Source of the DNA: Octopus bimaculoides
Lineage: Eukaryota
Assembly (NCBI RefSeq): GCF_001194135.2
Contig: NC_069002.1
Coordinates: 29,048,056 to 29,084,705, forward strand
Direction of reading: 5' to 3'
DNA: 36,650 nt
Positions 3,230 through 3,323 of this stretch are shown here, piece by piece (positions within the stretch are counted from its first letter, which is position 1; every line of letters starts with the position of its first letter). Under the pieces are notes generated by a model. The model saw only the letters and a list, made by a program, of their open reading frames with translations. It searched no databases and had not been told where the DNA came from. A program made the translations under genes and the position numbers.

Positions 3230-3323
3230 GAATTTATCCAATCCAGTGACTGGATTCATTTAGATATATCAGGTGTGAGAACGAACCAAGATGAAGTTCC
3301 TTATCTTGGTCGTGGAATGTCAG
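3230..3323 (+). CDS. LAP3: LAP3-like paralogue (gene A), exon homologous to gene B exon 13
   Basis: tgcag|...|gtaaga; 94 nt, same as 28651-28744; [31 protein letters not shown]. Confidence 0.93.

Follow-up and report, generated by a model that had tools for sequence, protein, structure and literature searches.

The leucine aminopeptidases (LAPs) of family M17, which are drug targets and a textbook example of two-metal enzymes, have an S1 pocket that is narrow and hydrophobic, and in the bovine enzyme Ala451 and Met454 belong to the S1 or inhibitor-binding site (PMC6789573, PMC8151835, PMC7180978). The window analysed here, a stretch of 36,650 nucleotides from contig NC_069002.1 of Octopus bimaculoides, contains the 3' end of one LAP3-type gene (gene A) followed by a complete second copy (gene B), and in gene A these two residues are replaced by Ser and Arg. 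An earlier note on this DNA proposed that gene A might be an M17 aminopeptidase of new specificity, or might be non-catalytic. Two questions arise: is gene A an intact gene or a decaying copy, and what are the two substitutions likely to mean for the substrates that its product accepts?

Layout of the locus

The exons in the window were located by tblastn with a human LAP3 sequence, which served only as a probe and on which no conclusion depends; the splice junctions were then set by eye. Gene A is a LAP3-type gene on the forward strand, represented in the window only by its terminal exons 11, 13 and 14. Its features are as follows.

414–493, + strand: gene A exon 11 of 14, 80 nt; acceptor AG at 412–413, donor GT at 494–495
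540–2375, + strand: expected place of gene A exon 12, occupied by a non-homologous insert, repeats and an N gap
3230–3323, + strand: gene A exon 13, 94 nt; acceptor AG at 3228–3229, donor GT at 3324–3325
3269–3271, + strand: gene A Ser codon TCA, equivalent to bovine LAP position 451
3278–3280, + strand: gene A Arg codon AGA, equivalent to bovine LAP position 454
5310–5374, + strand: gene A last exon (14), 65 nt, with the stop codon TAA; acceptor AG at 5308–5309

Exon 11 starts at the final two bases of the G362 codon and translates as (G)AITIALGSGASGTYTNSPALWDLLYK; it encodes G362, I364, T365 and I366, reading GAITIALG against GAVDVALG in gene B (27211–27290). Compared with exon 11 of the A-type gene of O. 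vulgaris, it specifies the same protein with two synonymous differences, and the protein sequence of the last exon is identical to the C-terminus of the O. vulgaris A type. The 79 amino acid fragment of gene A encoded in the window matches Pfam PF00883 with 31.2 bits (cut-off 25). The earlier description of the splice sites as intact applies to the three visible exons only; exon 12, which the visible sequence lacks, is considered below.

The stop codon of gene A lies 2.96 kb from the ATG of gene B, which is on the same strand, head-to-tail with gene A.

8334–30502, + strand: gene B, complete, canonical paralogue, 14 exons, 539 aa
8334–8468, 10826–10947, 12313–12473, 13404–13472 and 14786–14903, + strand: gene B exons 1–5
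16547–16705, 17654–17812, 19500–19624, 21621–21709 and 25267–25369, + strand: gene B exons 6–10
27211–27290, 27834–27983, 28651–28744 and 30447–30502, + strand: gene B exons 11–14
28651–28744, + strand: gene B exon 13, the comparison exon, with A451 encoded by GCT (28690–28692) and M454 by ATG (28699–28701)

Donors and acceptors were checked for exons 2–14 of gene B and follow the GT-AG rule, and the donor GT of exon 1 (8469–8470) adjoins an N gap. The protein, in which the catalytic and S1 residues are canonical, shares 96.5% identity with O. vulgaris CAI9738876.1 and 54–61% with the non-cephalopod LAP3-type proteins recovered in our search. Positions 28690–28701 read GCT GGT GTG ATG. On re-reading, the exon sequences and coordinates first given for genes A and B matched exactly. 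Short C-terminal protein queries (79 aa for A, 126 aa for B) returned fragments of similar length only and no cephalopod protein; the cephalopod relatives described below were found with the full-length gene B protein as query.

Several other features of the window were recorded. A 20-bp minisatellite at 3346–3656 (GTGGATTGGCAGATAGGGCA, 15.6 copies, 95% matches) begins 22 bp past the exon 13 donor of gene A. A SINE-like dispersed repeat family is present in many copies on both strands (3755–4115, 7404–7822, 105–325 and elsewhere in the window); it also occurs in the O. vulgaris locus and dominates the six-frame self-comparison of the window. The introns of gene B contain further minisatellites at 20948–21288, 27386–27693 and, around an N gap, 23809–25052, with units of 31, 38 and 16 bp. 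At 15189–15538, also in an intron of gene B, two 180-bp copies with 100% identity lie across a 10-N gap (15359–15368), and this duplicated unit looks like an assembly artefact. The Cys at bovine position 113 (gene B exon 4, 13404–13472) is lost from the octopod B-type proteins, which now have Ser, Ser and Ala; all 118 other sequences, the A type included, retain it.

Substitutions in the S1 pocket

Alignment with phmmer to the bovine chains 1bpm, 1lam and 1bll identified the changes in gene A as A451 to Ser and M454 to Arg, and the alignment of the gene B C-terminus to bovine LAP agrees with the numbering that had been reached in the earlier note. Among the five residues of the canonical, Leu-preferring S1 set, three (M270, T359 and G362) are kept and two (A451 and M454) are replaced, so that the remodelling of the pocket is partial. 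As had been claimed, gene A is a genuine LAP paralogue with a polar and a basic residue at two of the five positions that line S1.

The two columns are highly conserved. Position 451 is Ala in all 119 other LAP3-type proteins compared, a set reaching from molluscs to mammals, and Ser in the A type; position 454 is Met in 117 of the 119, with Val and Thr once each, and Arg in the A type. Since both are invariant or nearly so, they do not drift freely. In a broader set of 150 diverse representatives of the family (50%-identity clusters), Arg never occurs at 454 and Lys occurs once. Each of A451S and M454R needs two nucleotide substitutions. At columns conserved to at least 93%, only four A-specific changes are present in both A-type proteins, namely K324T, T431V, A451S and M454R. 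Two of these four fall in the five S1 residues among 167 conserved columns (hypergeometric P = 0.004, calculated post hoc).

A change at the residue equivalent to D365 had also been pointed out. Thr at this position is confirmed in exon 11 of gene A, but it says little, because the column varies across the family, with Asp in just 91 of the 119 other LAP3-type proteins; for the same reason we rejected D365T as the key change.

Gene A is already in public annotation ('cytosol aminopeptidase-like', LOC115223123, or in fused form), and the pocket variant appears to be undescribed. Our literature search found no paper on LAP of octopus or other cephalopods, and none that described octopod LAP paralogues or the pocket variant; neither PMC7225938 nor a review of bacterial M17 enzymes held any content on Ala451 or Met454.

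Orthologues and age of the duplication

The octopod relatives of the two genes are listed below.

O. vulgaris A type: CAI9738875.1 (P0092), 542 aa, 14 exons
O. vulgaris B type: CAI9738876.1 (P0212), orthologue of gene B
O. sinensis: XP_036368004.1 (P0211), 1084 aa, A and B fused; the A half contains HLDISGVR
Argonauta hians A type: P0094, containing GAITIALG and HLDISGVR
Argonauta hians B type: P0091, adjoining the A gene on one contig

The C-terminus of CAI9738875.1 equals the gene A exons of the window bar one residue (T455P). GAITIALG and HLDISGVR are found in the A types of O. vulgaris, O. sinensis (A half) and Argonauta hians, and all four octopod A-type sequences, the window included, have Ser at 451 and Arg at 454, so that the conservation in orthologues that the earlier note had proposed to check is borne out. 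The codons TCA (Ser) and AGA (Arg) are identical in the window, O. vulgaris and Argonauta. Sequencing error or polymorphism was rejected as the source of S451 and R454, since both residues are present in another three gene models, two of them with the identical codons. The cuttlefish Acanthosepion pharaonis and one decapodiform transcript have the canonical IAGVM, and this single type is all that the sampled decapodiforms show.

The four coding sequences (A and B of O. vulgaris and of Argonauta) were rebuilt from genomic DNA, with GT/GC-AG junctions imposed by the mapper, and equal the deposited proteins exactly. Three of the rebuilt models have 14 exons and that of Argonauta A has 13. Some of the annotation at these loci is misleading. 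The RefSeq 'uncharacterized protein LOC115223123' of O. sinensis (XP_036368004.1) is an A-B read-through fusion, and its locus name has been passed on to the Argonauta A-type protein as well. In the gene table of the O. vulgaris locus (OX597835.1:15832381–15893815, hereafter L001), the range of the A-type product (10001–51435 of L001) covers gene B too; the true positions in L001 have the A exons stopping at 29295 and gene B beginning at 31157.

In the neighbour-joining tree, the octopod A and B sequences together form a clade with 100% bootstrap support, within which the A clade has 100% and the B clade 98.5%, and the decapodiforms fall outside. On this topology the duplication is a tandem event of the octopod stem, preceding the split of Octopus and Argonauta. 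Distances calculated exon by exon are a mosaic. Exons 1, 11, 12 and 14 pair A with A and B with B, and at exons 2, 3, 7 and 10 of Octopus the paralogues are nearer to each other than the orthologues are. In Argonauta exon 7 the nucleotide distance between A and B is 0.012, the other exons differing by 14–60%, and a tract of approximately 0.5 kb with 91% identity (L002 17407–18270 against L003 10264–11548, the two Argonauta loci) runs from this exon into the intron. A tract of this kind, extending into non-coding sequence, indicates recent gene conversion between Argonauta A and B around exon 7. The A-specific residues persist despite this homogenisation of A and B exons. We rejected independent duplications in Octopus and Argonauta with convergence on Ser and Arg, since exons 1, 11, 12 and 14 and the trees group A with A. 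Exon 1 is very different in the two genes, and may encode a presequence in each.

Integrity of gene A

The earlier note had asked for the upstream exons of gene A, which in O. bimaculoides lie upstream of the window, and the catalytic residues were accordingly read in the orthologues. These exons are intact in O. vulgaris and Argonauta: the seven metal-binding and catalytic residues (K250, D255, K262, D273, D332, E334 and R336) are all kept in both A types, as is the NTDAEGRL motif, and M270, N330, A333, T359, G362 and I421 are also retained. The O. vulgaris A protein matches PF00883 with 384 bits (E = 6.8e-115, above the curated cut-off), and the N-terminal domain PF02789 of this orthologue is recognised at 31.7 bits (cut-off 23.4).

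Measures of constraint point the same way. The Nei-Gojobori dN/dS between O. vulgaris and Argonauta is 0.089 for A and 0.074 for B, both rough values because synonymous sites are saturated over this distance (dS 1.8–2.1). Across the three gene A exons of the window, five synonymous differences from O. vulgaris stand against a single non-synonymous one (ω about 0.06; P = 0.0035 in a test of neutral evolution). In relative-rate comparisons with a decapodiform outgroup, unique amino acid changes are equally numerous in A and B (for example 43 and 40). To judge by the kept residues, the dN/dS values, the exon differences and the equal rates of A and B, gene A is an intact gene under purifying selection and not a decaying copy. 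The argument made previously against random decay is thereby strengthened.

Exon 12 of gene A requires separate comment. In the relatives this exon has 150 nt, is of phase 0-0 and ends ...AAFLR in O. vulgaris. Homology of the window to the O. vulgaris locus ends at 539 (L001 25473) and restarts at 2376 (L001 25767), so that 293 bp of the O. vulgaris locus, exon 12 included, are skipped. The intervening 540–2375 contains a 23-bp tandem array (884–1236), a gap of 446 N (1687–2132) and a dispersed repeat (about 2143–2386). An exon-12-like reading frame of gene A was not found in the visible sequence of the window, and the sole match in the window to the region of exon 12 in O. vulgaris is exon 12 of gene B. 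Exon 12 of gene A probably sits in the assembly gap, which is big enough for the missing 293 bp. As this exon is unseen, the integrity of gene A in O. bimaculoides is deduced from its neighbouring exons and from the sister species.

Proposed change of specificity

The canonical M17 pocket is small and hydrophobic and offers no partner for a charged P1 residue; the acceptance of basic P1 residues by the M1 family is explained by a charged residue at the bottom of its pocket (PMC3281095). By the logic of the charged M1 pocket, an S1 site containing Arg and Ser should select against Leu and in favour of side chains that are polar or acidic. That two of the four A-specific changes at conserved columns lie in the S1 pocket makes a changed P1 preference plausible.

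A and B are head-to-tail LAP3-type M17 genes that descend from a tandem duplication in the octopod stem. The A type, which retains its two metal sites together with the catalytic Lys and Arg, is predicted to be hexameric and still catalytic. Its P1 preference would have shifted from Leu and bulky hydrophobic residues to polar, probably acidic, N-termini, the guanidinium group of R454 pairing with the side chain of the substrate, and gene B would retain ordinary Leu, Met and Cys-Gly activity. We lean slightly towards this account taken as a whole. Altered substrate specificity of the A type, judged from sequence, is the likeliest reading of the locus, with about an even chance of being correct, and a preference for acidic residues in particular is considerably less certain; we infer that R454 faces the pocket and which way the specificity would have shifted.

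A serious alternative is that A is a functional LAP with the substrate profile of B, the two copies having been kept for expression in different tissues, developmental stages or compartments. S451 and R454 would then be structural, or neutral and subsequently fixed, with R454 for example exposed to solvent or engaged in a salt bridge. In its favour, A retains three of the five S1 residues along with every S1' and catalytic residue, its rate of evolution equals that of B, and the very different first exons of the two genes would fit a divergence in regulation or targeting. This explanation must nevertheless account for replacements at two sites where the 119 LAP3-type proteins are invariant or nearly so, for two-step codon changes that were then frozen across octopods, and for the fall of half of the A-specific conserved-site changes within the pocket; we regard it as possible, if on the unlikely side. 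That A might instead be a non-catalytic structural or binding protein has a precedent in Drosophila S-Lap1-8, a lineage-specific M17 expansion with changed functional sites that is read as neofunctionalisation (PMC6388916), and the otherwise invariant K324 and T431 are also altered in the A type. The S-Laps, however, are inactive and have lost metal-binding and catalytic residues (PMC6388916), whereas the octopod A type keeps all seven together with NTDAEGRL and evolves as slowly as B. The non-catalytic option raised in the earlier note is weakened by these findings, and we consider it improbable.

It is also conceivable that gene A was recently disabled in O. bimaculoides itself by deletion of exon 12 and insertion of repeats, leaving S451 and R454 with no present function. 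The exon and its 293-bp surroundings are indeed absent from the visible sequence, with unrelated repeat-rich DNA in their place, but this is exactly where the 446-N gap falls, and they would fit inside it. Moreover, the flanking exons show the five-to-one excess of synonymous differences from O. vulgaris with splice sites and stop codon intact, and even true loss of exon 12 would not shift the frame, because the exon is of phase 0-0. A recent loss is for us very improbable. The remaining explanation, proposed earlier as a possibility, is that A-to-I editing turns the Arg codon AGA into IGA, read as Gly. Recoding of transcripts is widespread in coleoid cephalopods, but nothing specific to the Arg454 site of gene A was found. 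Both A's of AGA are preceded by G, the 5' neighbour least liked by ADAR; the folding of the surrounding 201 nt is no better than that of shuffled sequences (z = -0.53); and AGA is conserved between the window, O. vulgaris and Argonauta, as would be expected if selection acts on Arg itself. Editing therefore gained no support and is highly improbable as an explanation.

Comparison with other M17 enzymes

The A type shares with bovine lens LAP (1LAM, 1BLL, 1BPM) and LAP3 the PF02789 plus PF00883 architecture, the seven metal-binding and catalytic residues and NTDAEGRL, and shares with the canonical copy B the 14-exon structure. Canonical LAP3 differs from it at 451 and 454, and K324T and T431V are likewise confined to A.

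PepB of Salmonella and E. coli, another M17 enzyme, is named in PMC5638241 (citing Mathew et al. 2000) among the aspartyl-cleaving peptidases of Salmonella, an indication that a preference for acidic P1 residues is possible within M17. E. coli PepB has the M17 catalytic core and reads HIDCSATY-RK; it resembles the A type in having Ser at the 451-equivalent position, a basic residue (Arg) one or two positions after 454 and no Asp at 365, where it has Lys, and differs in having Tyr at 454. These equivalences come from a profile alignment with about 38% identity over the catalytic domain and a one-residue gap at 454–455. The A type is not of the gamma-proteobacterial PepB lineage, as it nests in the cephalopod LAP3 clade with 100% support. 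PepB belongs to a distant bacterial lineage, and the likeness is suggestive only and does not reflect shared descent of the variant. No structural paper on PepB was found in our literature search; the 'PepB' of PMC7858622 is the name of an antibody, not the peptidase, and was set aside.

A further parallel to the pocket occurs in the sea spider Nymphon striatum, an arthropod, where KAG1690723.1 (P0237) reads HLDVSGVKE. This protein, about 47% identical to the octopod A type, combines S451 with K454, that is, Lys and not Arg; it keeps the catalytic residues and K324, and position 365 is Gly. Our knowledge of it comes from one draft gene model, in which the WRMPLF...AAFLK segment of the domain is missing. 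From the sequences, the Ser-plus-basic pair of Nymphon looks like an independent origin. Perhaps an octopod LAP3 became specialised for Asp/Glu or polar residues through A451S and M454R, with the combination of Ser451, a basic residue at 454 and no Asp at 365 arising independently in a sea spider and resembling PepB; this broader and more specific proposal is speculative, and we think it rather unlikely to hold in full.

Implications

A charged S1 residue is rare in nature, being found in none of the 119 close relatives and in one of the 150 diverse representatives. Here such a variant adjoins its canonical sister in one genome, and since A is conserved, keeps its catalytic residues and has an altered pocket, the two genes together offer a natural experiment on the sequence basis of P1 specificity in the M17 family. 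Should A and B prove to have the same profile, A451 and M454 would not be the specificity determinants that they are assumed to be. If the broader proposal of repeated specialisation for Asp/Glu or polar residues is true, S451 with a basic residue at 454 would be a general and readable specificity switch of the M17 family. The A type could also reveal an unrecognised peptide-processing activity in octopods.
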